NCBI GenBank assembly: GCA_965202585.1
Contig: OZ241826.1
Location: forward strand, 34,844,001 to 34,908,000
Reading direction: 5' to 3'
Source: Thalia democratica
Taxonomy: Eukaryota
Length of the DNA: 64,000 nt
This document shows, piece by piece, positions 2,086-64,000 of the stretch. Numbering within the stretch: position 1 is the first letter of the stretch; each line of letters opens with the position of its first letter. The position numbers and the translations under genes are program-made. The notes under the pieces were generated by a model that was given only the letters and a program-made list of their open reading frames with translations, was not told where the DNA came from and searched no databases.

Positions 2086-5000
2086 ATCTAGAGTCTACAA
2101 AAGTAAAATATTTTTGTTGTCAAGCAACCACTTTTTTTGAATTTATATATATAATTTATGAACAACCGTCCCGGGTTACTTCTTAACAATTAGCTTGTCA
2201 AAATTTCTAGTCGCTTCTCTGTTCTTTATTCCGCTTAGTGAATCCTCGTTTATCCAGTCATAATATATTTTCATTATAATTAATTATTGCATGATTAGTC
2301 TTTTTCTGAATAGATTTTTTTTTTGTTTACCTATTTTATATTTTGCAATACGAGTGATAATACGCACACTAACATTTTTGTTAATGTAAATTACTTTAAT
2401 GTTTTTCAGCGAGCCAAGCAACTAATTCAGACAAAAAACAAGAAAAACTAACTTAAACAAATTCTAAAAACAATTTTTATGACAACAAACCACAACGTAA
2501 ACAATTTAATTCATATCGGTTTTACGTTAAGAAGTAAAAAAAAGTTAGTTGAATTAATCAAGTCTATGTCCTGACTGAAACCGGTCAAAGTAACGAAGGA
2601 TCGCATTAGTTAGAACCAGATAAGTGAGTATGTTTTTTTTTTTTTCTAAGTTATGCTTGAGTAGTAAGTATTATTATTTTTATATTTAAGGTTGAAGGCT
2701 TGTTATTCTGATAATAAAGTAGTTGACAAGGATACTAAGTGTTTTATTGATAGTTTAAAAAAATAAGTTAATAACAAATAAGAAAAAAAATAAATTGTAA
2801 GGGTTGTAAGCTACTTGTAAGTGAGGTACTTATATCAGTTTTAAGTTCAGAACTGCAGAAAAAATGTTCTTATAAAACAAAATTTAGCCCACTAGAGCTC
2901 TACAACCATAATTAGTTAATAAAAATAAAAACAAACCTTTATCAAAAAAAAAATCATTTTATAGTAAGTAATTTTCACAGCTCTTATACAATTTATAAGA
3001 AATTTTTGCTTTACTTAAGTTAACTTCAAAGTTACACTAGTCTTTAATAGTCTTTATTTGTGAATTGAAGTTTAGCCTTAGTATTTAAGACTCAGCTTAA
3101 ATATAAAAAAACTAATATAGAAAATTAAAAACTTTGAAGCTACTTTGAATAAGACAATAAAATATATAAGCTAATAACTTAAATAAAACATTAAAATTAT
3201 GCTTTGGGTATTAAAACAAAATACTTTAAGGTTGTTTAAAGATAAAGCATAAATAATCAGGGGGCCTGAGTAAACATGAGAAACCGATTTTTTAACAAAA
3301 AAATTAAGTACATTTATAAGATAACTTTAGTATAAGCTATTTTTAGGCACATTACTGTGCCTTTTAAAATTTATTTACAGTGAACAAGAGTTTAGAGAGA
3401 ACACGTGTGAAATATTTTAAATGTAGTTAGTATATAATTCAAAAGATGTTATTTTTTTCCGATGTGTAAAAATCTAATGACGTCACTAAAAGAAAACAAT
3501 GGCTTTTTGACGTCAATAACTTTTTTATGGTCTACTTGCTTGAGGCCATAATAGCAAGTAAAGATTTTTCATGTTTGTTTTTGTTTATGTTATTTCTTTG
3601 AAATGCAGGTATTTACTTTGTTTTCAACTAAAGACCTAAAATAAATGTTTTGAAAAAACTACAATGTACAGTTTTTAAATTAAAAAATAAAAAACTTTTA
3701 TGAACAATTAAAACAACTATTGACGTCAAAAAGCCATTGTTTTTTGCTGGAAACCAAATCTGACGAAAAGAAAACTTTTTGACATATTTTTAATCAAATT
3801 TCTACAAACTTAGAATAATTTTTGAAATTTTCACCCAATTAAAGTATGGTACGTGAAAAGTTTACTTTACTTATTCGAATGAAAAGGTATCAAAAGCTTT
3901 TCATCACACCAAGCAAAAGTATAATATTTAATAAACTTAGTTTAGTTATTTAAAAAAAATTTAGTTTGTAAATATGATAGTAAAATTGTTTAAGTTTTTA
4001 CTTGACGCAGTTAACAGTGTCAATTTGTTTTTATATTCTTCAAAAAAGGTTTTGATTGAATAATGTATTTTTCAGTCCAAATAAAAATCAACTTTAAAAA
4101 CTATACTATTTAATTCTAGTAACAATAATAAAAAATATTTTTGTAAACAATTTTATAAGTGTTCTACTAAACTGTTAGTTATATGACAAAAGCATTATGC
4201 ACTCTCGCACTTTTAGTGACGTCATTAGATTTTTACACATCGGAAAAAAATAACATCTTTTGAATTATATACTAACTACATTTAAAATATTTCACACGTG
4301 TTCTCTCTAAACTCTTGTTCACTGTAAATAAATTTTAAAAGGCACAGTAATGTGCCTAAAAATAGCTTATACTAAAGTTATCTTATAAAAGTACTTAATT
4401 TTTTTGTTAAAAAATCGGTTTCTCATGTTTACTCAGGCCCCCTGATTATTTATGCTTTATCTTTCAACAACCTTAAAGTATTTTGTTTTAATACCCAAAG
4501 CATAATTTTAATGTTTTATTTAAGTTATTAGCATATAAATTTTATTGTCTTATTCAAAGTAGCTTCAAAGTTTTTAATTTTCTATATTAGTTTTTTTTAT
4601 ATTTAAGCTGAGTCTTAAATACTAAGGCTAAACTTCAATACACAAATAAAGACTATTAAAGACTAGTGTAACTTTGAAGTTAACTTAAGTACAGCAAAAA
4701 ATTCTTATAAATTGTATAAGAGCTGTGAATATTACTTACTATAAAATGATTTTTTTTTTGATAAAGGTTTGTTTTTATTTTTATTAACTAATTATGGTTG
4801 TAGAGCTCTAGTGGGCTAAATTTTGTTTTATAAGAACATTTTTTCTGCAGTTCTGAACTTAAAACTGATATAAGTACCTTACTTACAAGTAGCTTACAAC
4901 CCTTACAATTTATTTTTTTTCTTATTTGTTATTTACTTATTTTTTTAAACTATCAATAAAACACTTAGTATCCTTGTCAACTACTTTATTATCAGAATAA

Positions 5001-43029: not shown

Positions 43030-44936
43030 GGCTTATCAAACTTTAGGGGAAGTCTCTTCACCTTTCAAATAATATCCTTGCTTCAAACCACCAATGCATT
43101 TATTGTGTTTTGCTTTCATTTTGATTCAAGCATGTGTTTCTCAATAAGTGTGTAGGCAATAGTTACGTCAGCAAGCAAGAGAAGAATAAGAGGGTAATTG
43201 TTTTGTCTCGTATTTAAAACAATATTTTGGTTTATGGAGATAAATGATATTATTAGTGAGAAAATTAAATAAATTTCATTTGTATATGTTTTAGGTGCTT
43301 GTAAATTTCCAAAAACGCATACTTATAAACTTCAATTTGTTCTAATTTTATTTATATTCTTAGTATTTAAAAAATGTAAAAGACTGAAATAAAACAAAAA
43401 GTATGATTGAAAGTATTTAGCAGTAGCTTAATTAATTTGCAAGATCATTAGAGTTTTAAAAAAATATAAAATAAATTTACTAATGTTTTTTTAACAAAAA
43501 CTTTTGTGATGTTAACAATAAATTTTTATTGACTAGTTTTACTGTTTAAATAAATTATTACAGTAGCTTAAAGTATTAAATATTTTTATAGAAAAATATA
43601 AATTAAATGTATTGTAAGCTTGAACATAAGTGTTGTATAGCTAAGATTTTGTAACTAAATCTGATATTCTTAAAGAAAATTGTTTCTAATAAAGTTTGTC
43701 TAAATCTAACGGTTCTAGAAATTGTATTTTTTGCAAATGTTTTGTCGAAACTGGACAGATTTAAGTTAAAATGTTTACTTGTTCAAAATTAATTTTTCAA
43801 ACTAGTTGCTAGCAGTAGTAATTGAAAAGAGTTAACCGAAATATATCTTACATGTTTTGTTTAATAAAACGTTTTTGAATGAGAAAGGTCTTAAACTTTT
43901 GTATTTAGGCTTTGATTTAAAATTAACTTACGTACTTTTTTATCATTGTAGTTAAAACTTTTAAGCTTTGTTGTACTAAAGTTATTATTTAACTTATAAT
44001 TTAAAACTTAAAATCAAGGTTTTTTACATTGTCTTTGTACTTAGAAAGTCAGATTTTTAAACTAGAACAGCTTATGTCTGTAAAACTGAACTATGAAGTT
44101 TGTCAAATTATGTTTAATTTTCTCATACCATTTTAGATTGAAGTAACTTATTAAGCAGCTACTTTAATTTAGTTCATACAGTTTAGGCCTAGGAAATATT
44201 TAAGACTAATGAGCTACTTGCTTTATTAAAATCTTATTTTTAAAATACTAAATTAAAAACTATTGATTAATATTATGCAATATATATTTAATATATTAAT
44301 TATTTATGTATTAGTTGCGTACCATAAACTAATTAACATCTAAACTAAAATATTGTATAATAATTACTGAAATATAAAACTTAGTGTTTAATTTTACTGT
44401 TTTCTAGAATACCAGTGATGAAAACTATTTTTCAACCATATTAAGCAGCTACTTTAATTTACTTCAAACAGTTCAGGGAGAGTTTTGAAACTAATCAGCT
44501 TCTTAAATTATCTAAATCTTTATTTTAAAACTTTAAATTGTGATGTAATGACTAAATTCTATTTACTTTTATCAGACTAAATATTTGTGTTTTACACATT
44601 ACTTTAATAATAAGTAAAATTACAGTAAACATATAACATGTATAATTATTGGAATAAAACACTATATACTTTATTTAAATGATTTCTAAAACTTTATTAG
44701 ATAGTTTTTATAGATTCTATGTAAAACTCAGTCAACTTCAATTACATAAATTAGTTCTATTTCATACATTTTTCATTAAAAAAAGTTTAACTTTAATTCA
44801 GATTTTCAGTAATAATATATTAATTCTTGTTTCGCTAAAAACTAATTAAGAATTCATTACCTATAATTTTAAGTAATAGAAAATGTATCCTAAAAATTTT
44901 AAAATTAACACAGTTGTTGTAGTATTAATATTGAAA

Positions 44937-47499
44937 ATGCATATCAAAAAAGCTTGGATAGATGAAGTGTACCAGAGATTTTTTGTAAAATATGAACGCG
45001 AATCACATGCTGATTTTTACTTATTTGACAACAAAGCTAAAAGAGCTCACAGGGTAATTATAAGAAGGTTGGAAGGTCAGTGCTCCATAAATGAGAAAGG
45101 TAAATTGCAGCGTAGTAGGAATGAAGAGGGTAAATTCCAGCAGTTTCTGGTGAAACTTGACAAAATGTATCCGAAACTTATGAAGAAAAAATTCAAGCTT
45201 CTTGATGGGACTGAAAGGAAACTTTCTTGCAAGAACTTTGCTAGACTGTTTGTTGTTTTAATGTTTTACTTATCCATAATTTATAGCCTAGTAATTCAGA
45301 TATAAAACGGATTCAAGTATAAAGTTGATACGTGTTTGTGTCAAACTAACTTAAATGTTTGTTAATTCTAAAACGTTTTATTACTATTTAATCTGTATTT
45401 AGTTCATAAGTTTTCTCAATAAGTCGTAGTTATGACTTTTTAGACAGTTTAAAATTATGTAAAAATTCTAGTTCATTGAAACTTTAACTTAATTATTGAG
45501 TGTATGCAAAATTTATTCTATTAATGAAATTTAAATTTTAGTGCACGAACAGTATGTCTTAAGACAGGTATCATCTTAGTGTACAAAATTATGTTAAAAA
45601 TTTTAACAGTTTTCGTTTTGTCAGGTATAATCTAAAGCCACTTAAATGTCCCCACTGGCAACGTAATATTCTTTCAATTACAGATAAAATAATGAATAAT
45701 CATTACTTACTTTTGATCCGGACAGATCTCAACAGCGTCTTTACGATCAAATGTTACCAAGAGTTTACAGGCGACACCTGAGAAGATTTGAAGATTGTGA
45801 TGCGATTGAATACAGCGAGTTTACTAGAGCTGCAAGAAGTGCTTATAATCAGTTGTTGGACACATTAGATGCTCAAACCAGAAGAAAAGAAGTTAATAAG
45901 TATAACGAGTTTTTAAACAAAATCAAAGACAGGAATCCTAACATTTTGGCAGGTGTTATGGAAATGAATGACTTTAGTAGAATGTATGTTGTTTCAATTG
46001 ACTTGGTTTAAAAACTGCAGTTAAAATTCAAAGAAAATAAATGCAAAATAAATAAAGAACTTGAACTTAATTAGTAAATAGATTAATTTTATAACCTTTA
46101 GATATGCACTTCTAAATATGTTTTAAGAATATTTTATTTGAAATAAAAATAATAAGATTAAACTATAAGAAATTTAGTACCAAATACAAATTTAAATTTT
46201 CTAAAGTCTAAAACTAAGATTAATATTCTGAATCTATCATTTAACCACTTAAATGGAATTAAAAATATTAAAACAAGCTTATAAACAACAAATTTTTAGT
46301 TATAATTTTTATATATTTAATCAACTATGCATCACAGAAATGAAGAAGTTCACAAAAAGCAACGAAAGGTGGGAGGGATTTTGCTCGATCCGACTTGCAC
46401 CAAGATGCTCCTGGTCATAGACAAGTACACGGGCCATCTCCGGTTCCCGAAAACAAAAGCGGTAGACGAAAATCGATCGTTGCAGGAGGCTGAAGCTAGA
46501 ATTAAGCAGGAGTTCGGTTGGAAGGAAATGTTTGGTGAAATGAGGCCAACAAGACCAATTGTACTTGATCCGGTGAGACACAGCGTTACGGCTATCCACA
46601 CCTTGTATTACGTGGTCAACGTTCCCACAGAAGCACCGAAATTAGCCAGACTGTCGAAAGAGTTCAAAGTCAAGTACGTCGACATTGACAGGATCAAAAA
46701 AACCGGATGGTATGGCAACACTCGGTTGAAGGTGACAAAAGTCGTTATGGATTGTTTGAGTCAAGTCAAGGAGTTTTGTCTTAAACGTGCTCATAATGAA
46801 AGGTTTGATTCGTCTCTGACTGATAACTTATTCAAAAAAAGTATTGATTCTGGCTAGTTACAACCTAAATAAGTTATTATAAAATAAAGGTTTTGATTAG
46901 CATTTAACACTAGTATAACTTATGTATCAAATATGTTATTCAAATAGATTATTTTAATTAAAGCAATATTTTTTTTTATCTTTAATTAAATTTAGATAAA
47001 TAAACTTTTATACCAGTAACCAGTTATTTTTTCCAGCAATAAACCTCACATAGTTGGCGGTATTCTACTTGATGCTGATTCCAAGACAATTTATCTTCAA
47101 AAAATTCACTCTGGCAAGTACGATTTTCCAAAGCGCAAACTTGCCAAAGGTGAAAACACGTTCGCAGGTGCCAAGAGGGTGGTTGAAGAGAAAATTGGAT
47201 TAAAAGTTCCTTACAACGCTATAGATCGTGACAGACCCATTACAGTTTATCCGAAGGGAACGGTTCCTCACACTTTTTATTTTATACGCAACCTGCCGCT
47301 TGACCAACCGCATTTCCGCGAAAACACCGAAGCCTTCAAGCTGGACAAAATAAACGAAGACAGCGGTTACTATAAGTGGACTGGCAAAAGAGTGACAATG
47401 GCAGTATATGAAAGTTGGGAGAAAATCAACAAGCGTTGTAATGGAGATGACGAGGAAGAAGAAGAAGTTCCTGATAATGATAGAAACTTTTGGTTGTGA
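44937..47499 (+). CDS. Four-exon DCP2-derived protein (~498 aa), two Box A-like plus two Nudix-like domains, catalytically degenerate
   Basis: Exons 44937-45247, 45726-45983, 46338-46802 and 47037-47499, joined by three phase-2 GT-AG introns, 1497 nt with no internal stop. VGGILLD...LLV...FPK.K occurs twice, and a Box A-like DEVYQRF...RAH...F...YP.L pattern occurs twice. Confidence 0.8.
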
Positions 47500-47860
47500 T
47501 TGTTGAAGGTTAGAACATGCGTTGGTTGATAGTGATGAGCAAACTGGAACGAATTTTAATTTTGTTTAAACTTTATTCGTTTTCATGAATAATTTTGTTC
47601 GTTTTTGTGTTGCTATGTTCGTTCATATGTTTTGATATTTTGTTAATAAACCCGCCTTAGTTACTCTGCAAGTCTGATTATTTTTAGTTTAGTAACAGTA
47701 AAAAATTTAATTAATAAATTTTTTTGAACTGCAGAATCCTGTTGAAACCTTGTAGCTTAATGAGTTTCTATTTTTGGGGATATATTGAGACTTTTGTGTT
47801 AGTAACTTAGATGATAGGGTTGATCACGCCAATTCGATCATCAGACCACAAGTTTCGGTA

Positions 47861-47903
47861 GACTGAGAACGGTTTCGTCCTTATCAGGACTCATCAGTCA
47901 GTC
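47861..47903 (-). ncRNA. Type I hammerhead ribozyme within a rod-like element (47815-47950)
   Basis: The minus strand reads GACTGA-CTGATGA-GTCC-TGATAA-GGAC-GAAA-CCG-TTC-TCAGTC: perfect stems I and II and a full core, but a weak stem III with a UUC site (C at 47867). Confidence 0.8.
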
Positions 47904-50252
47904 ACAACCAAAAAACTTGTAGTCATCAATCTACAAACGGTTTATCATGCTTTCACATGAATTAACGATTTGCTAGCAATGATCAGTGACGTTAGCATTG
48001 TCATTTGCCGTGAAACGTTTAAAACATTGTCCACTAAGCAAGACATCTGGCACGCTCGTTTTAGTACGACCAACAAAAAAAATATTTATCTTAACTTAGA
48101 TGATGTGAGTAACCTGTGTAGGTTAACCTTAGTATTTTGCTTTTAAGGTTTTGGGACTTAATAATTTAATTTCATTTAATCAAGTTTCAGAACATGGTTT
48201 ATAAAAGAGCCGTATTCGGTCTCACAAGCTTATTCTGTTAAAATAAGCTATTATTCACTTTTACTGTTATTATAAATTAATATTTATTTATTCGGTAATG
48301 TGTGTTAAATAAGTTAACATTTATAATTAGAACAACATGTCTAAAATTTAATTTATACACTTGATTTATAGCTTACCGGTAAAGTTTAAAACTCTAAAAG
48401 AAGTTATTAGTTATACTTTAGCTGAATTAGAGTTAGTAAAATTAAAATTTTGAAAAGAAAAGTTTGTGTTTTGAAAATGTTTACGGAAAACCTGGATAAA
48501 GTCTTTTAAAGTGAGTTTTACAAGATTAGCTTGAAAAATCATACAAGTCAGTATTAAAAGACACAAGCTCTAAGTACTTTTCAGCCTTCTTCAACTTACA
48601 ATTTCATTACAAATCAGTATACCTTAAGCAAACACATTTAAGACTCCATTTAGCATAAACCCGCAAGTGAGGGTTTACACAAAACAAACTTATACATTAC
48701 AATATCCGTTAATAGTAATACAATTATGGTTTCTTCAAAAAAAACTTAAAAACTTCTAATGTCGTTAAAATGGAGAATGTTTTAATTTTTTGTCCAACAA
48801 TAAAAAAAGCGCAAAAAAAGTGTGGACTTAAGACCTGGTGTACAAAGAAACTTTCGGTTATTAGACCCAAAATAATTTTGCATAAAGTTAAAACTGTTAA
48901 AAGCTTTGAAAGTAACAAATTATTTTATTTTTCAAGCTTAATTAAAATAAGAAAAAAATATTAACAAAATTGAACTTTAATTAGTTTGTTTTTACGATAG
49001 TCTGAAGGAGAAAGTAAACAAAAACAATAAAAGTTTGTAAGATTGAAAGTATTAATAGTAAAAGACTCATTAAATTGGTCATTGGCAGACATTATTAAAT
49101 TAATTAAATTCAAGCTTAATTTAAATAATTTTTAATTAAAATTTGTTAGATTAAATCACAGATTAATCGTTTTAGAATTTGCAGAATTTGTTCAAAATTA
49201 AAACTGCTTTACAAACAAGTTTAGCGTAGCTGATTAAAATAAAATTAGCTCAAAATGTTCGTATTGAAATCTAAGTGTCTTTTACATTGTGACCGACGCA
49301 TTTTACTAATTTATTGTATGATATGTTATAGTATATAGAAAAGTTGAATAATAATTTGTATTATTATTTATTTTTTTTGAAAAGCAGAAAAAACGTATGT
49401 TTTGAAAATAGTGAGCGTCAAATATTAGCTGTTATAAAAAATTCTAAGTATAAGATATTTAGCTATTTATTTATACTTAATTAAACTTAAAACCAACACT
49501 TTAAATCACTTTAATTTTGAAAATGATAATATATTAATTTTTCAATTCATTTAAACGTTTAAAATATAGCAATTTCTAGATAATCATTTAGATTTAATAA
49601 TTTAAACAGTTTTTATTTTTTGATTGAAAATTTTCTTAAAATGAAAATTAACTGTAAAGTTCTTTTAAACGTGTTTCAAAGTTCAATTTATCTTGTTACT
49701 TTTTTTGTTACATATTTTTTAGTAAGTTTAATATTACTACAACACTACTTTAAATTTAGTTTTTTTATTATATACTTCACTAAATTTTAAACTGACTTTT
49801 ACATTAATCATAAATAAAATCAGTTTTTTTTTTGTTACAATACATAAACTAAAGTAATAAACATTTCTAAAAATTGTTCATAAATTTTTAAACATGTAGC
49901 CACATAGTGTTTTTCATACTTTCTTACAATGTTAATATATTGATATTCAGCGGAAAATATTGTTAGATCAGTTTGATGTTTAACATAATAAATTTTGCTT
50001 TGTGGTGTAATTAATTTGTTCTTTTAAAACTAAGTACTATCTATCTTTGAACAACAGCATTGAAAGCAAAGTTAAACAAACGAGACTTTTTAAATACAAA
50101 CATTTGTACAAACGTTCAAGCTTTCTATCAAGCAGCCTAAACTTTTCTTAAAGGCTGCACAAAACACTAAACTGTTTTAAAGCCATTTGACAAAATACAA
50201 ATATGCCAAACAGTTTTGTATGCTGTAGTAGATTTAAAGTCGACCGCAAGAA

Positions 50253-54862: not shown

Positions 54863-55060
54863 ATGCATATTAAAAAAGCTTGGGTAGATGAAGTATACCA
54901 GAGATTTGTTTTGTAAATTATGAAGGCGAAACAGGTGTTGATTTTCAACGAATTAACAACAGAGTAAAAAGAGCTCACAGTGTAATTAAAAGAAGGTTGG
55001 AAGGACAGTGTCCCATAAATGATGAAGGTAAATTGCAGTGTAGGAGGAATGAAGAGGGTA
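54863..55060 (+). pseudogene. Frameshifted paralog of the first coding exon of the DCP2-like gene
   Basis: MHIKKAWVDEVYQRF, then a 1-nt insertion, then FVNYEGETGVDFQRINNRVKRAHSVIKRRLEGQCPINDEGKLQ running into the array. The ~1.9 kb upstream is colinear with 42982-44937. Confidence 0.85.
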
Positions 55061-58000
55061 AATTGCAGTGTAGAAGGAATGAGGAGGGTAAATTGCAGTG
55101 TAGTAGGAATGTGGAGGGTAAATTGCAGTGTAGTATGAAGGAAGAGGGTAAATTGCAGTGTAGTAGGAATGAGGAAGGTAAATTGCAGTGAAGTAGGAAT
55201 GAAGAGGGTAAATTGCAGTGTAGTAGGAATGAAGAGGGTAATTTGCAGTATAGTCAGAATGAGGAGGGTAAATTGCAGTGTAGTAGGAATGAGGAGGGTA
55301 AGTTGCAGTGTAGTCGGAATGAGGAGGGTAAATTGCAGTATAGTCGGAATGTGGAGGGTAAATTGCAGTGTAGTAGGAATGAAGAGGCGAAATTGCAGTG
55401 TAGAAGGAATGAGGATGGTAAATTGCAGTGTAGTATAATTGAATAGGGTAATTTGCAGTTAAGTAGGAATTAGGAAGATAAATTGCGGTGAAGTAGGAAT
55501 GAGAAAGGTAAATTGCAGTGAAGTAGGAATGAGGAGGGTAAACTGCAGTGTAGTAGGAATAAGGAGGGTAAATTGCAGTGTAGTAGAAATGAGGAGGGTA
55601 AATTGCAGTGTAGTAGGAATGAGGAGGGTAAATTGCAGTGTAGAAGGAATGAGGAGGGTAAATTGCAGTGTAGTAGGAATGAAGAGGGTAAATTGCAGTG
55701 AAGTAGGTATGAAGAGGGTAAATTGCAGTGTAGTAGGAATAAGGAGGGTAATTGCAGTGTTGTAGGAATGAAGAGGCGAAATTGCAGTGTATAAGGAATG
55801 AGGAAGGTAAATGCAGTGTAGTAGGAATGAGGAGGGTAAATTGCAGTGAAGTAGGAATAAGGAGGGTAAATTGCATTGTAGTAGGAATTAGGAGGGTAAA
55901 TTAAAGTGTAGTAGGAAAGAAGAGGGTAAATTGCAGTGTAGAAGGAATGAGGAGGGTAAATTGCATTGTAGTCTGAATGTGGAGGGTAAATTGCAGTGTA
56001 GTAGGCATGAGGAGGGTAAATTGCAGTGAAGAAGAAATGAGGAAGATAAATTGCAGTGAAGTAGGAATAAGGATGGTAAATTGCAGTGTAGTAGGCATAA
56101 GGAGGGTAAATTGCAGTGTAGAAGAAATGAGGAAGGTAAATGCAGTGTAGTAGGAATGAGGAGGGTAAGTTGCAGTGTAGAAGGAATGAGGAGGGTAAAT
56201 TGCAGTATAGTCGGAATGTGGTGGGTAAATTGCAGTGTAGTAGGCATGAGGAGGGTAAATTGCAACGAAGAAGAAATGAGGAAGGTAAATTGAAGTGAAG
56301 TAGGAATGAGGAGGGTAAACTGCAGTGTAGTAGGCATAAGGAGGGTAAATTGCAGTGTAGAAGAAATGAGGAGGGTTAATTGCAGTGTAGTAGGAATGAG
56401 GAGGGTAAATTGCAGTATAGTCGGAATGAGGAGGGTAAGTTGCAGTATAGTAGGAATGAAGAGGCGAAATTGCAGTGTAGAAGGAATGAGGATGGTAAAT
56501 TGCAGTGTAGTATAAATGAATAGGGTAATTTGCAGTTAAGTAGGAATTAGGAAGATAAATTGCAGTGAAGTAGGAATGAGGAAGGTAAATTGCAGTGAAG
56601 TAGGAATGAGGAAGGTAAACTGCAGTGTAGTAGGAATAAGGAGGGTAAATTGCAGTGTAGAAGAAATGAGGAGGGTAAATTGCAGTGTAGTAGGAATGAG
56701 GAGAGTAAATTGCAGTGTAGAAGGAATGAGGAGAGTAAATTGCAGTGTAATAGGAATGAAGAGGGTAAATTGCAGTGTTGTAGGAATGAAGAGGCGAAAT
56801 TGCAGTGTAGAAGGAATGAGGAGGGTAAATTGCAGTGTAGTAGGAAAGAAAAGGGTAATTTGCAGATAGGTAGGAATTAGGAAGATAAATTACAGTGAAG
56901 TAGGAATAAGGAAGGTAAATTGCAGTGAAGTAGGAATAAGGAGGGTAAACTACATTGTAGTAGGAATAAGGAGGGTAAATTAAAGTGTAGTAGGAATGAA
57001 GAGGGTAAATTGCAGTGTAGAAGGAATGAGGAGGGTAAATTGCATTGTAGTCGGAATGTGGAGGGTAAATTGCAGTGTAGTAGGCATGAGGAGGGTAAAT
57101 TGCAGTGAAGAAGAAATGAGGAAGGTAAATTGCAGTGAAGTAGGAATAAGGATGGTAAATTGCAGTGTAGTAGGCATAAGGAGGGTAAATTGCAGTGTAG
57201 AAGAAATGAGGAAGGTAAATTGCAGTGTAGTAGGAATGAGGAGGGTAAGTTGCAGTGTAGAAGCAATGAGGAGGGTAAATTGCAGTATAGTCGGAATGGG
57301 AAGGGTAAATTGCAGTGTAGTAGGCATGAGGAGGGTAAATTGCAGTGAAGAAGAAATATGGAAGGTAAATTGCAGTGAAGTAGGAATGAGGAGGGTAAAT
57401 TGCAGTGTAGTAGGAATGAGAAGGGTAAATTGCAGTAGTAGGCATGAGGAGGGTAAAATGCAGTGAAGAAGAAATGAGGAAGGTAAATTGCAGTGAAGTA
57501 GTAATGAGGAGGGTAAACTGCAGTGTAGTAGGCATAAGGAGGGTAAATTGCAGTGTAGTAGGAATGAGGAGGGTAAATTGCAGTGAAGTAGGAATGAACA
57601 GGCGAAATTGCAGTGTAGTAGGAATGAGGAGGGTAAATTGCAGTGTAGAAGGAATGAGGAGGGTAAATTGCAGTGTAGTAGGAATGAGGAGGGTAAATTG
57701 CAGTGTAGTAGGCATGAGGAGGTTAAATTGCAGTGTAGTAGGAATGAGAAAGGTAAATTGCAGTGTAGTAGGAATGAGGAGGGTAAATTGCAGTGTAGTA
57801 GGAATGAGGAGGGTAAATTGCAGTGTAGTAGGCATGAGGAGGGTAAATTGCAGTGTAGTAGGAATGAGGAGGGTAAATTGCAGTGTAGTAGGAATGAGGA
57901 GGGTAAATTGTAGTGTAGTAGGCATGAGGAGGGTAAATTACAGTGTAGTAGGCATGAGGAGGGTAAATTATAGTGTAGTAGGAATGAGGAGGGTAAATTG

Positions 58001-58139
58001 CAGTGTAGTAGGAATGAGGAAGATAAATTGCAGTGTAGTAGGCATGAGGAGGGTAAATTACAGTGTAGTAGGAATGAGGAGGGTAAATTGCAGTGTAGTA
58101 GGAATGAGGAGGGTAAATTGTAGTGAAGTAGGAATGAGG
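55017..58139. repeat. 30-bp minisatellite, ~100 copies (AATGAGGAGGGTAAATTGCAGTGTAGTAGG)
   Basis: Direct inspection. It translates as NEEGKLQCSR but is interrupted by stops and frameshifts. Confidence 0.98.
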
Positions 58140-60825
58140 AAAACTTATGTTCTATATTTAAAGGGTATCTTCAAGAAGTACGCATCCGTGTTAGGTACGA
58201 ACAAATAAAAAAAAGTGTTTATCCATTACATTCAAAGAGTATCTTTAAGAAGTACGAATCCGTGTAAGGTAAGGATAAGTTTAAGGGCATAGGGGGGTAA
58301 AACACTTTTTTCACAATGGTATCTTGTTTTGTTTAGTTTTAAATAAGCTAAAAGATGCAATTTACAGATTTTAAAAATTCAAAATAGCTTTTGAGATATA
58401 GCCGATAAAAGTCGGAGGCAACAATAGGTTCCTTATGGGAGGCACTACTATAACAGCAAATAAATAGAAATCACTAAAATTATATCTCCTAGCATTTTTG
58501 AGAATACTACCACAAATTTCTAGAATTATCTTGCGCCCGTATGCTTTCATTATCTCAAATTTTTAACTGTCACATTTGCCTACGAAATAAGTTTTTCTCT
58601 AAACAACATTAAACTTAGTAAATTTATAAACAAATCAAATACAATGGAAGTAGAAATTAGTAGGATTAGTTTTACAATTTAAAAGATGTTGTGACACACC
58701 TAACATACAAATACTCAACTGGTCATGCAAAATTGCTTCAAAAGGCATAATCAGCACTTAAAACTTATGCGAAGCTTTTAAAATATATCTAAAGGCAAAA
58801 CTTAAAAGAATTTTTAAAGCAGCATTAAAAAGCAAAAAGAGCATTCAAATACAGATATTATTAAGATTATACTTTGTAGAAACGTATACCCTTTTAAAAG
58901 CAGCTTTAACTAAAAACGCAAAAATTTTCGAGCTGCTTCAAAGCACTTTTACATAGAATTAATTACGCCAGCATGCTTTCCATGCTCTACCAGAATTGAA
59001 AACAGCCGCGACAACAATTTGTAATACGTTAGCTTTTTTTGTGAAGCATCAAGTTGTAAAATGCTAGCACAGATTTTGTGTAGTATTATGCTGTAAGCTG
59101 CTGGCACAAGTTTTGTGAAACATCAAGCTGTACTAGACTTGTTCAGCATTATGTATGTACAAGTATACTACAGCGACTTATTTTACTTTTAGGTGAAATT
59201 TCATCACCTTTTAAACTATTTCGCCAACATGGACTTTCCAACGCAGTTAATGTGATTTGCTTTTTACATTTTTATCGTCTATGTACTTATCAATGTGTGT
59301 GTATGCAATTGTTACGTTAGCAATCGAGAGAAGATTAAGTAGGTAATTCTTCTCTTATATTTGTAGCATTAGTTGAGTTTGTGAAGGGTAAATAATGCTA
59401 TTTGTGATAATATTTAACAAAATTCATTTGTATATGTTTTAGGTGCTTTTTAATTTCCTAAAATACATGCTTATAAATTTCAATTTGTTTTACTTTTAAC
59501 AATTTTTAAGTATTTAGAATTAGAAAGAGATTAAAGTATTCAATAAAGTATCGTTTAACAATTTTACTAATAGCTTAATTAATTTTAGTATATTATCATT
59601 AGAGTTTAAAATAAATTAAGATAAATTTAGGACTGTTTCTAAAACTAGAGATTTAATACTGGTAACAGTATTTTTTTAATGAATAGTTTTACTGCATAAT
59701 TGAATTGTTAAATTAGTTTAAAATGTTAAGTATTTCTTTAAAGAAAAATAAATTAAATTCTTTAAAACTGTAACATAAGTATAATAAAGCTAATATATTT
59801 TTACTAACTTCAGTATTTAAATGATTTTTTTTTATAAAATATTCTAAATAAAGCAATTTTAAAATTTTTATTTTTTCAAATGTCATGCAAAAACTGGACG
59901 CATTTAAGACTTGGCTATTGCACTGATTTAAGTCGATATTATTTGCTTAAATTTTTTTATTTAAACTAGTTGCTAACAATAGTTATTTAAAATTGTTACC
60001 TTGAATATAACTTACATGTTTTTGCTCATTAAAACCATTTTAAATGAGACGATTTTCAATTTTTTTAAAACTTTTAATTAAAACAAACTTACATACTTGT
60101 TTTTTTGTTTACTTTGTTTTCACGTTAAATTTTTAAAGGTTTTTGTACTTATATTATTATTTAGCTAAATAATTTAGAATTGAAAAGTAAAGTTTAATTT
60201 TTTACCTTGTATATCAGCTTAGACACGTTTAAACCTGAACAGCTAATATGTAAACTGAACAGTGAAATTAGTCGAAAACATGCTTAATTTTTCTCAAAAT
60301 TTTATAGATATAAGAAATTGAATTAAACGACTTTTTAAGTTTCCTTCAAACAGTTTAAGGAGAGTTTTGAAACTATTGAGATGCTTGCTTCATTAAAATG
60401 TTGGATTCATGAATTAAATATTAAACTGTTACATATTTAAAGGTTAATTAGTTAAGTCGTATTTTCTTAGCATTCACTATTTTGAGATTTAAAATATCTA
60501 CAGTAGACATATTATGAAACAAGTACTAGAACATAAAACTAAGTGTTTACTTCAAATTTTAATCTTATCTAAAAAGTTAATGTTGAATTTATGATTTTGT
60601 AGGTTGCATGTAAAACTTAATCAAGTATATGTACATAGAGTAAATGATATTGTTTACATTTTAAGTTGATAAACTTTAGCTTAACTTTAGATTTTCAGTG
60701 TAATTTTACTATTTCTTAACTATCTAAAAATTAAGAAAAAAATTACTATCTAGCATATTAGGTTGTCTAAATGAAGTTTATCCTAAAATCTTTAAATTGA
60801 TACAGTTGTTGTACCAAAATTGAAA

Positions 60826-61023
60826 ATGCATATTAAAAAAGCTTGGGTAGATGAAGTATACCAGAGATTTGTTTTGTAAATTATGAAGGCGAAACAGGTG
60901 TTGATTTTCAACGAATTAACAACAGAGTAAAAAGAGCTCACAGTGTAATTAAAAGAAGGTTGGAAGGACAGTGTCCCATAAATGATGAAGGTAAATTGCA
61001 GTGTAGGAGGAATGAAGAGGGTA
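60826..61023 (+). pseudogene. Second copy of the frameshifted DCP2-like paralog
   Basis: Matches 54863-55060, including the frameshift. Confidence 0.85.
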
Positions 61024-64000
61024 AATTGCAGTGTAGAAGGAATGAGGAGGGTAAATTGCAGTGTAGTAGGAATGTGGAGGGTAAATTGCAGTGTAGTATG
61101 AAGGAAGAGGGTAAATTGCAGTGTAGTAGGAATGAGGAAGGTAAATTGCAGTGAAGTAGGAATGAAGAGGGTAAATTGCAGTGTAGTAGGAATGAAGAGG
61201 GTAATTTGCAGTATAGTCAGAATGAGGAGGGTAAATTGCAGTGTAGTAGGAATGAGGAGGGTAAGTTGCAGTGTAGTCGGAATGAGGAGGGTAAATTGCA
61301 GTATAGTCGGAATGTGGAGGGTAAATTGCAGTGTAGTAGGAATGAAGAGGCGAAATTGCAGTGTAGAAGGAATGAGGATGGTAAATTGCAGTGTAGTATA
61401 ATTGAATAGGGTAATTTGCAGTTAAGTAGGAATTAGGAAGATAAATTGCGGTGAAGTAGGAATGAGAAAGGTAAATTGCAGTGAAGTAGGAATGAGGAGG
61501 GTAAACTGCAGTGTAGTAGGAATAAGGAGGGTAAATTGCAGTGTAGTAGAAATGAGGAGGGTAAATTGCAGTGTAGTAGGAATGAGGAGGGTAAATTGCA
61601 GTGTAGAAGGAATGAGGAGGGTAAATTGCAGTGTAGTAGGAATGAAGAGGGTAAATTGCAGTGAAGTAGGTATGAAGAGGGTAAATTGCAGTGTAGTAGG
61701 AATAAGGAGGGTAATTGCAGTGTTGTAGGAATGAAGAGGCGAAATTGCAGTGTATAAGGAATGAGGAAGGTAAATGCAGTGTAGTAGGAATGAGGAGGGT
61801 AAATTGCAGTGAAGTAGGAATAAGGAGGGTAAATTGCATTGTAGTAGGAATTAGGAGGGTAAATTAAAGTGTAGTAGGAAAGAAGAGGGTAAATTGCAGT
61901 GTAGAAGGAATGAGGAGGGTAAATTGCATTGTAGTCTGAATGTGGAGGGTAAATTGCAGTGTAGTAGGCATGAGGAGGGTAAATTGCAGTGAAGAAGAAA
62001 TGAGGAAGGTAAATTGCAGTGAAGTAGGAATAAGGATGGTAAATTGCAGTGTAGTAGGCATAAGGAGGGTAAATTGCAGTGTAGAAGAAATGAGGAAGGT
62101 AAATGCAGTGTAGTAGGAATGAGGAGGGTAAGTTGCAGTGTAGAAGGAATGAGGAGGGTAAATTGCAGTATAGTCGGAATGTGGTGGGTAAATTGCAGTG
62201 TAGTAGGCATGAGGAGGGTAAATTGCAACGAAGAAGAAATGAGGAAGGTAAATTGAAGTGAAGTAGGAATGAGGAGGGTAAACTGCAGTGTAGTAGGCAT
62301 AAGGAGGGTAAATTGCAGTGTAGAAGAAATGAGGAGGGTTAATTGCAGTGTAGTAGGAATGAGGAGGGTAAATTGCAGTATAGTCGGAATGAGGAGGGTA
62401 AGTTGCAGTATAGTAGGAATGAAGAGGCGAAATTGCAGTGTAGAAGGAATGAGGATGGTAAATTGCAGTGTAGTATAAATGAATAGGGTAATTTGCAGTT
62501 AAGTAGGAATTAGGAAGATAAATTGCAGTGAAGTAGGAATGAGGAAGGTAAATTGCAGTGAAGTAGGAATGAGGAAGGTAAACTGCAGTGTAGTAGGAAT
62601 AAGGAGGGTAAATTGCAGTGTAGAAGAAATGAGGAGGGTAAATTGCAGTGTAGTAGGAATGAGGAGAGTAAATTGCAGTGTAGAAGGAATGAGGAGAGTA
62701 AATTGCAGTGTAATAGGAATGAAGAGGGTAAATTGCAGTGTTGTAGGAATGAAGAGGCGAAATTGCAGTGTAGAAGGAATGAGGAGGGTAAATTGCAGTG
62801 TAGTAGGAAAGAAAAGGGTAATTTGCAGATAGGTAGGAATTAGGAAGATAAATTGCAGTGAAGTAGGAATAAGGAAGGTAAATTGCAGTGAAGTAGGAAT
62901 AAGGAGGGTAAACTACATTGTAGTAGGAATAAGGAGGGTAAATTAAAGTGTAGTAGGAATGAAGAGGGTAAATTGCAGTGTAGAAGGAATGAGGAGGGTA
63001 AATTGCATTGTAGTCGGAATGTGGAGGGTAAATTGCAGTGTAGTAGGCATGAGGAGGGTAAATTGCAGTGAAGAAGAAATGAGGAAGGTAAATTGCAGTG
63101 AAGTAGGAATAAGGATGGTAAATTGCAGTGTAGTAGGCATAAGGAGGGTAAATTGCAGTGTAGAAGAAATGAGGAAGGTAAATTGCAGTGTAGTAGGAAT
63201 GAGGAGGGTAAGTTGCAGTGTAGAAGCAATGAGGAGGGTAAATTGCAGTATAGTCGGAATGTGAAGGGTAAATTGCAGTGTAGTAGGCATGAGGAGGGTA
63301 AATTGCAGTGAAGAAGAAATATGGAAGGTAAATTGCAGTGAAGTAGGAATGAGGAGGGTAAATTGCAGTGTAGTAGGAATGAGAAGGGTAAATTGCAGTA
63401 GTAGGCATGAGGAGGGTAAAATGCAGTGAAGAAGAAATGAGGAAGGTAAATTGCAGTGAAGTAGTAATGAGGAGGGTAAACTGCAGTGTAGTAGGCATAA
63501 GGAGGGTAAATTGCAGTGTAGTAGGAATGAGGAGGGTAAATTGCAGTGAAGTAGGAATGAACAGGCGAAATTGCAGTGTAGTAGGAATGAGGAGGGTAAA
63601 TTGCAGTGTAGAAGGAATGAGGAGGGTAAATTGCAGTGTAGTAGGAATGAGGAGGGTAAGTTGCAGTTTAGAAGGAATGTGGAGGGTAAATTGCAGTGTA
63701 GAAGGAATGAGGAGGGTAAACTACAGTGTAATAAGAATGAAGAGGGTAAATTGCAGTGTTGTAGGAATGAAGAGGCGAAATTGCAGTGTAGAAGGAATGA
63801 GGAGGGTAAATTGCAGTGTAGTAGGAAAGAAAAGGGTAATTTGCAGATAGGTAGGAATTAGGAAGATAAATTGCAGTGAAGTAGGAATAAGGAAGGTAAA
63901 TTGCAGTGAAGTAGGAATAAGGAGGGTAAATTACATTGTAGTAGGAAAAAGGAGGGTAAATTAAAGTGTAGTAGGAATGAAGAGGGTAAATTGCAGTGTA
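60980..64000. repeat. 30-bp minisatellite, second array (runs off the window)
   Basis: Matches the first array up to about 63620, then differs in variant order. Confidence 0.98.

Follow-up and report, generated by a model that had tools for sequence, protein, structure and literature searches.

A candidate Dcp2-derived pseudoenzyme gene with duplicated N-terminal and Nudix domains in Thalia democratica

What kind of protein is encoded, in four separate pieces, at positions 44937 to 47499 of a 64,000-nucleotide stretch of the Thalia democratica genome (GCA_965202585.1, contig OZ241826.1, 34,844,001 to 34,908,000 of the forward strand; 'the window' denotes this whole stretch)? Dcp2 is the central mRNA-decapping enzyme, which is regulated by movements of its N-terminal and Nudix domains and by the Dcp1 and Edc cofactors, and an earlier note, made from the letters of this DNA alone, had proposed that the locus is a spliced gene for a catalytically dead Dcp2 derivative in which the Box A-containing N-terminal regulatory domain (NRD) and the Nudix domain both occur twice, an architecture that it did not recognize from any described protein; it saw in the product a putative RNA-binding scaffold or decoy for Dcp1 and decapping activators. 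The literature search likewise found neither a Dcp2-type pseudoenzyme nor a description of a BoxA-BoxA-Nudix-Nudix architecture. Taken as a whole, the reading that we consider the probable one is that of a spliced, Dcp2-derived NRD-NRD-Nudix-Nudix gene whose product has lost catalysis and would act by binding.

The window is AT-rich eukaryotic DNA (27.6% G+C), and the four exons, all on the plus strand, join into an open reading frame of 1497 nucleotides that encodes 498 amino acids plus the stop. The three introns, read directly from the sequence, are each GT-AG and phase 2, so that the assembly of four fragments into a protein of about 498 residues, as first proposed, is confirmed by the joined frame; the peptide strings quoted in support of it are present as written. 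Judging from the sequence, the locus is a real spliced four-exon gene for a Dcp2-descended protein. The ATG at 44937 is kept across paralogs and relatives, except in one copy that lacks a start ATG (L013, below). The upstream in-frame ATG at 44883, 54 nucleotides earlier, was rejected as the start because it is not conserved. The features of the gene, with the evidence for each, are as follows.

44937..45247, plus strand: exon 1, with the start codon and the first Dcp2-NRD (Box A)-like domain (conserved ATG; AlphaFold2 model of exon 1)
45036..45071, plus strand: putative Box A core of repeat 1 (AKRAHRVIIRRL), with Arg and Arg at the Dcp2 Trp and Asp positions (hhalign register, alignment A2)
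45248..45725, plus strand: intron 1, GT-AG, phase 2 (comparative conservation)
45726..45983, plus strand: exon 2, the second NRD (Box A)-like domain, a duplicate of exon 1 (tblastn to the paralog on contig C5)
45829..45867, plus strand: putative Box A core of repeat 2 (AARSAYNQLLDTL), with Asn at the Trp position and the Asp retained (alignment A2, hhalign register)
45984..46337, plus strand: intron 2, GT-AG, phase 2 (missing from transcript contig L015)
46338..46802, plus strand: exon 3, the first Dcp2-type Nudix domain (BLASTP to the canonical Dcp2 of the same genome)
46453..46521, plus strand: degenerate Nudix box 1 (TKAVDENRSLQEAEARIKQEFGW), with G1T, E7N, R15A, E16R and E19Q, and with E20 and G22 retained (aligned with the canonical box GKINQKEEHIDCAIREVKEECGI)
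46705..46737, plus strand: motif G[WY]YGxTxKxVT of Nudix copy 1, at the place of the Dcp2 Box B (alignment A1)
46803..47036, plus strand: intron 3, GT-AG, phase 2 (missing from L015 and its protein P0020)
47037..47499, plus strand: exon 4, the second Dcp2-type Nudix domain, an acidic tail and a TGA stop (Pfam NUDIX, BLASTP)
47134..47202, plus strand: degenerate Nudix box 2 (RKLAKGENTFAGAKRVVEEKIGL), with G1R, E16V and E20K, and with E7, R15, E19 and G22 retained (sequence, alignment A1)
47365..47397, plus strand: family motif of Nudix copy 2, GYYKWTGKRVT (alignment A1)

Where, then, does this protein come from? Its family includes, besides the duplicated form of the window, a single form with one copy of each domain, which survives as an intact gene on contig C5 (34227494-34229337) next to a further C5 copy with three stop codons, and which is found as transcripts in relatives (P0003, P0012 and P0015, 241 aa). 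The Nudix half is clearly derived from Dcp2. When the family profile was compared with the sequences in PDB, the top 14 matches were all Dcp2 chains (E 1.5e-13 to 2e-10), the best Nudix protein other than Dcp2 having an E value of 3.8e-5; the alignment of the family with four Dcp2 proteins by hhalign (probability 99%, E 2e-18) comprised 222 collinear columns that start at the first Box A helix, span the whole Nudix domain and include a predicted C-terminal helix after the Nudix fold, the sequence of which is that of the family motif, not the Box B consensus. This motif, G[YW]YGxTxKxVT, is conserved in all members of the family (alignment A1). The predicted fold points in the same direction: with the AlphaFold2 model of the single-form protein P0003 (predicted local distance difference test score, pLDDT, 86.3), the first 26 Foldseek matches were all Dcp2, among them the activated Kluyveromyces lactis complex 6am0_A with a TM-score of 0.72 over 253 columns, and in VIA-align comparisons the Z scores of Dcp2 were 15-20, as against 14.8 or lower for every other Nudix protein. 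The model aligns with hundreds of Nudix structures at Z>8. The model superimposes on 5n2v_B with a root mean square deviation (rmsd) of 3.2 over 205 residues (model residues 1-234), and its residues 1-241 on residues 11-246 of K. lactis Dcp2 with an rmsd of 4.6 over 225 residues; the language-model features of P0003 in the ESM Atlas fall into the 'Dcp2, box A/NUDIX' clusters at 0.98. Exons 3 and 4 both align over their full length with the single form (alignment A1). Thus, the claim that the gene carries Dcp2-like Nudix copies is borne out by the PDB profile search, hhalign, Foldseek and VIA-align; the Pfam NUDIX model matched exon 4 below its cut-off (18.8 bits against 21.1, E 0.0017) and did not match exon 3. 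Precomputed NUDIX matches exist for the single form and for P0020, the protein of the relative that covers exons 3 and 4. A viral origin was considered and rejected: the decapping Nudix proteins of poxviruses and African swine fever virus score far below Dcp2 (g5R, E 0.41), and introns and the NRD are present.

A separate canonical Dcp2 is present in the genome, on contig C2 (36366000-36376940; L017, L001), with a Box A exon that scores 75.8 bits with PF05026 and a Nudix exon in which the box, GKINQKEEHIDCAIREVKEECGI, is intact, with E/E/E at positions 16, 19 and 20. The family profile matches this protein with an hhalign E value of 4e-11, and in BLASTP comparisons exon 3 matches its Nudix exon with an E value of 1e-5 and exon 4 matches the protein with an E value of 2e-8. 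Like Dcp2, which profile search, profile-profile comparison and fold comparison all rank as its best match, the window protein has a helical regulatory domain at the N terminus, ahead of Nudix of the Dcp2 type, and keeps the YGAI[IL]LD-like strand (GGILLD here) and the FPKGK lead-in to the Nudix box. Unlike Dcp2, it has both domains twice, has lost catalytic glutamates and the cap-contacting Trp in both N-terminal repeats, escapes the Pfam Box A model in the N-terminal domain, carries the family motif at the place of Box B and lacks the long disordered C-terminal tail. As to the canonical protein itself, it is short (its orthologue P0032 has 349 aa) and only 30-32% identical to the Dcp2 of Clunio marinus, the best-matching named animal; this divergence suggests a fast-evolving lineage. 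Dcp1, the partner of Dcp2, is split into exons in this genome and gives a weak match to PF06058 (30 bits).

How did the duplicated architecture arise? The proposed duplication of the Nudix domain is borne out directly, exons 3 and 4 being 27% identical over 137 aa (BLASTP E 2e-15; E 1.9e-7 when the whole genome of 800 Mb is searched). The proposed resemblance between exons 1 and 2 is weak in direct comparison (E 0.003) and emerges through the paralog on C5, since both exons match its single N-terminal exon (tblastn, E 9e-10 and 8e-11, respectively); both Nudix exons, likewise, match its single Nudix exon, with 38-40% identity, the range being 36-42% for the C5 paralog taken together with its transcripts. 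Because both pairs of exons match single exons of the C5 gene, the four-domain gene derives from a two-domain, two-exon gene, and the sequence comparisons indicate that this occurred by two tandem exon duplications. The C5 paralog belongs to the same family, has its sole intron at the homologous position and in the same phase, and shares a degenerate Nudix box (RQIIEN); it differs from the window protein in having one copy per domain and much shorter branches in the tree, and in keeping G1, E7, R15 and E19 of the Nudix box and a Tyr at the position of the cap-contacting Trp. Canonical Dcp2 falls outside the family in the domain tree, where the family forms a monophyletic group (100/99); the clade of exon 3 and that of exon 4 both have full support and long branches (1.6 and 1.03), the branch of the single form being very short. 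The duplications predate the splits from the relatives because the protein P0020 of one relative has both Nudix domains and the Tara Oceans contig L020 of another has both N-terminal copies, with exon 2 downstream of exon 1. An unrelated case of duplication is seen in Cryptolaemus montrouzieri, which has a cluster of short Dcp2-like Nudix proteins (P0009, P0022 and P0023; KAL3289288, KAL3289291 and KAL3289301), one of which, P0009, contains the Nudix box and the segment that immediately precedes it twice in tandem.

Is such a gene maintained, or is the locus part of a decaying, non-functional family of duplicates? Four copies of the duplicated form lie within about 750 kb on contig C1 of this genome of about 800 Mb, in segmental duplications of at least 8 kb, and some members of the family show signs of decay: the copy L013 (C1:34948500-34956500), in which exons 2-4 are open, has an insertion of about 304 nucleotides in exon 1 (about 2960-3273) and no ATG, and is probably a recently disabled copy, one of the C5 copies has the three stop codons mentioned above, and the exon 1 of a distant relative contains an in-frame stop. 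However, intact open reading frames (498, 510 and 510 aa) and all splice sites are retained in three of the copies on C1, orthologues are transcribed and spliced in relatives, and the gene is under purifying selection. The ratios of nonsynonymous to synonymous substitution rates (dN/dS), calculated by the Nei-Gojobori method, are 0.14-0.36 for the full length, well below 1, 0.11-0.26 for exons 1 and 2 together, 0.10-0.18 for exon 3 and 0.44-0.60 for exon 4, comparisons with the relative's transcript included, which suggests that exon 4 is the least constrained part, with a constraint that is relaxed, though its evolution is not neutral. The exons are also far more conserved than the introns: with respect to the copy L014, identity is 97-99% in exons 1-3 and 85-86% in the introns; with respect to L013, it is 89-96% in the exons and about 70% in introns 1-2. 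We therefore regard a merely decaying family as highly improbable, and the evidence fits a Dcp2 pseudoenzyme that is restricted to one lineage and kept up by selection.

An exhaustive search of 1.84 billion representative proteins with HMMER yielded 10 matches at E<=0.001, about six of which belong to the family, and all the family matches come from marine assemblies, whether of metagenomes, transcriptomes or sequencing runs; the Tara Oceans metagenomes, also marine, contain relatives. The distant relative with the in-frame stop (L018 and L019, from Tara Oceans and ENA contigs) has an exon 1 orthologue that is 62% identical to exon 1 of the window and lacks its 10-residue loop insertion. The paralogs are mosaic: the window copy is nearest to L012 in exons 1-3 (98-99%) and to L013 in exon 4 and intron 3 (94.6% and 89.2%), the part in which L012 and L014 pair with each other and have a 36-nucleotide insertion in common. 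This pattern suggests recombination or gene conversion between the copies.

The points that weigh against the reading of the locus as a spliced, duplicated and inactivated derivative of Dcp2 concern the splicing, the N-terminal repeats and the catalytic residues. The predicted splicing held for introns 2 and 3 by way of a relative's RNA. L015, a 1052-nucleotide JGI metatranscriptome contig (sample 3300018893) that is 78-85% identical to the window in the DNA alignment, carries an open reading frame of 315 aa (P0020) that runs without interruption from the end of exon 2 through exon 3 to exon 4; its positions 2-69 correspond to 45916-45983 and 70-518 to 46338-46786, with the junction 45983|46338 exactly as predicted, and positions 536-1048 correspond to 47035-47550, intron 3 being absent. 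Introns 2 and 3 are thus removed in a related species because they are absent from this contig. For intron 1, the prediction has the support of conservation: its GT and AG are kept in the paralogs L012, L014 and L013 and in L020, and in comparison with L020 the identity is 92% in exon 1 and 90% in exon 2 but 68%, with many gaps, in intron 1. The sole intron of the single form (L010 4749-5869, GT..AG, phase 2) is spliced out in the metatranscriptome contig L022. No transcript spanning exons 1 and 2 was found by tblastn of exon 2 over metagenome contigs or via an exact 22-mer common to L015, and the only matches of a word-index search around exon 1 were open reading frames in the genomic DNA of relatives, all unspliced. 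Three sequencing runs found with the whole region cover introns and exons alike, with zero splice joints, and are DNA-like and uninformative; a search restricted to RNA-Seq libraries listed none. The RNA that bears on the junctions is that of relatives.

Could the duplicated exons then be used alternatively, with exon 2 as an alternative first exon or with exon 2 or exon 3 skipped, such that NRD-Nudix or NRD-Nudix-Nudix proteins are the main products? All introns are in phase 2 and exons 2 and 3 (258 and 465 nucleotides) are both multiples of three, so that skipping of either would preserve the reading frame; exon 2 contains an in-frame ATG, at 45751, and the transcript searches described above found no RNA that spans exons 1 and 2. 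Against this, the relative's transcript holds exons 2, 3 and 4 in one molecule, the donor GT of exon 1 and the acceptor AG of exon 2 are kept in three paralogs and a relative, and exons 1 and 2 are both constrained. On balance, predominantly alternative use of the exons appears unlikely, and we return to the four-exon protein.

Are the N-terminal repeats really Box A domains? Here, sequence profiles failed to bear out the earlier proposal. The Pfam DCP2 model PF05026 has no match (E<=10) in exon 1, in exon 2 or in 10 N-terminal domains of the family; the profile of the N-terminal domain found nothing among PDB sequences; hhalign on this domain alone is non-significant (E 0.047, probability 1%), as are BLASTP comparisons of exons 1 and 2 with the Box A exon of the same genome (E 0.05-0.11); and the ESM Atlas features of exon 2 alone gave no usable match. 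Predicted fold and collinearity, in contrast, uphold the proposal. The AlphaFold2 model of exon 1 (pLDDT 83.5), compared by VIA with 48,161 representative chains, matched only two at Z>=5, both of them NRDs of Dcp2, namely 6y3z_A from Saccharomyces cerevisiae (residues 15-94, Z 6.6, rmsd 2.7) and 2qkl_B from Schizosaccharomyces pombe (residues 6-91, Z 6.5), the third-best chain having a Z of 4.6, and the S. pombe NRD was also first in the Foldseek ranking, with an E value of 1.9.

These findings leave some room for the view that the helical domain of the N-terminal repeats is unrelated to the Dcp2 NRD and only resembles it, so that the Nudix half alone would come from Dcp2. Consistent with that view are the lack of a significant stand-alone sequence match to Box A, the poor Foldseek E value of the exon-1 model and the fact that a Z of 6.5 for a small helical domain falls in the range where chance arrangements occur. 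It is opposed by the specificity of the matches, with the two best of all chains being Dcp2 NRDs that stand 2 Z units clear of the rest and the Foldseek search placing the same domain first, by the position of the repeats N-terminal to the Nudix domains in an alignment that is collinear with Dcp2, by the superposition of the whole single-form model on Dcp2 described above (rmsd 3.2-4.6 over 205-225 residues), and by the distant members P0013 and P0014, in which A-K-W-[ED]-Y-[FL]-[ED] stands in the register of the Dcp2 sequence A-Y-W-F-Y-L-D and thus preserves the pattern A-x-W-x-Y-[LF]-[DE]. An unrelated N-terminal domain is accordingly very unlikely in our estimate, and Box A ancestry of the repeats is well supported by the predicted structures. 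In the hhalign and MAFFT register, the positions of the cap-contacting Trp and Asp of Dcp2 (W43 and D47 in S. pombe) are occupied by R/R in exon 1 and N/D in exon 2, so that the Trp is indeed replaced in both repeats, as had been claimed, by Arg in the first and Asn in the second; P0013 and P0014 retain the Trp, with E or D at the Asp position.

Does the protein still hydrolyze anything? The Nudix box has the pattern Gx5Ex7REUxEExGU, whose glutamates at positions 16, 19 and 20 serve as metal ligands and general base. In the Dcp2 of K. lactis, Mg is bound by E148 (position 16), and the general base is E152 (position 20) (PMC5861098). The substitutions listed in the earlier note are found in both copies exactly as given there: positions 16/19/20 are R/Q/E in exon 3, which also has G1T, E7N and R15A, and V/E/K in exon 4, which also has G1R. 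The same positions are Q/E/N in the single form, N/N/R in the distant form P0013 and S/C/R in the distant form P0014, with no other changes in these three. Hence, of the three catalytic glutamates, each Nudix copy in the family has at most one; the structural positions E7, R15 and G22 are mostly kept. Because no member retains more than one, the loss of these glutamates dates to the origin of the family and, for the same reason, cap hydrolysis by this protein is most likely abolished; that it lacks catalytic activity altogether we hold to be likely, this being a prediction from residues.

The alternative, under which hydrolase activity persists in a non-canonical active site, directed for instance at a different cap-like or nucleotide substrate by way of the residues that remain in the second Nudix copy, draws on the fact that exon 4 keeps E7, R15, E19 and G22 as well as adjacent glutamates (VVEEK) that are one position off, that the single form keeps E19, and that purifying selection shows the fold to be in use. 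Yet exon 4 has K and the single form has N in place of the general base E20, every member lacks the Mg ligand E16 (roles as in K. lactis Dcp2, PMC5861098), and exon 4 is the least constrained part. Residual hydrolysis is thus quite unlikely, and the inactivated, Dcp2-derived protein remains the reading with which the following scenario is concerned.

Under this scenario, the ancestor would be a two-exon paralog of Dcp2 with one NRD (Box A) and one Nudix domain, the form that survives on C5 and is expressed in relatives; two tandem exon duplications would have produced the NRD-NRD-Nudix-Nudix arrangement, and segmental duplication the four copies on C1, three of them intact. The protein would then bind the 5' end of RNA or the partners of the NRD (Dcp1, enhancers of decapping) and in doing so would modulate, or compete with, the intact canonical Dcp2. 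A functional analogy is provided by NUDT16L1 (Syndesmos/TIRR). This paralog of the decapping enzyme NUDT16 is reported to be inactive and to bind protein as well as RNA (PMC6294507), and so would likewise derive from a decapping Nudix enzyme, with catalytic residues lost and binding as its mode of action. It differs from the window protein in belonging to the Nudt16-like subfamily (PF22327) and in having a single domain, no Box A and no internal duplication; the ESM Atlas scores of P0003 are 0.91 for Nudt16-like proteins and 0.98 for Dcp2. Of the conceivable modes of action, non-catalytic binding seems the most likely, and a role as a binder or competitor may be entertained tentatively. The more specific proposal, to which we would give slightly less credence still, is that of an endogenous non-hydrolyzing mimic of Dcp2 that binds mRNA 5' ends or titrates Dcp1 and the enhancers, as a decapping inhibitor or a specificity switch, and that, as a covalent pseudo-dimer, could engage two partners. 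If this is correct, the protein could be the first endogenous regulator that is a Dcp2-type pseudoenzyme, and would be a natural separation-of-function variant that may reveal surfaces of Dcp2 used for binding without catalysis.

Elsewhere in the window, the gene is closely followed on its downstream side by a 280-nucleotide insertion (approximate length; 47815-48092), which is not found in the three paralogous copies and has a word depth of up to about 7e5, compared with about 150 in its flanks; on its minus strand, 47848-47911 give a sub-threshold match to Hammerhead_HH9 (25.4 bits against a gathering score of 52, E 4e-4), and the insertion looks like a very high-copy, hammerhead-bearing mobile element. 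Farther downstream, at 54986-63850, long repetitive open reading frames with repeats of the YYTAIYPPHS and MRRVNCSVVG types occur on both strands, twice, about 6 kb apart.

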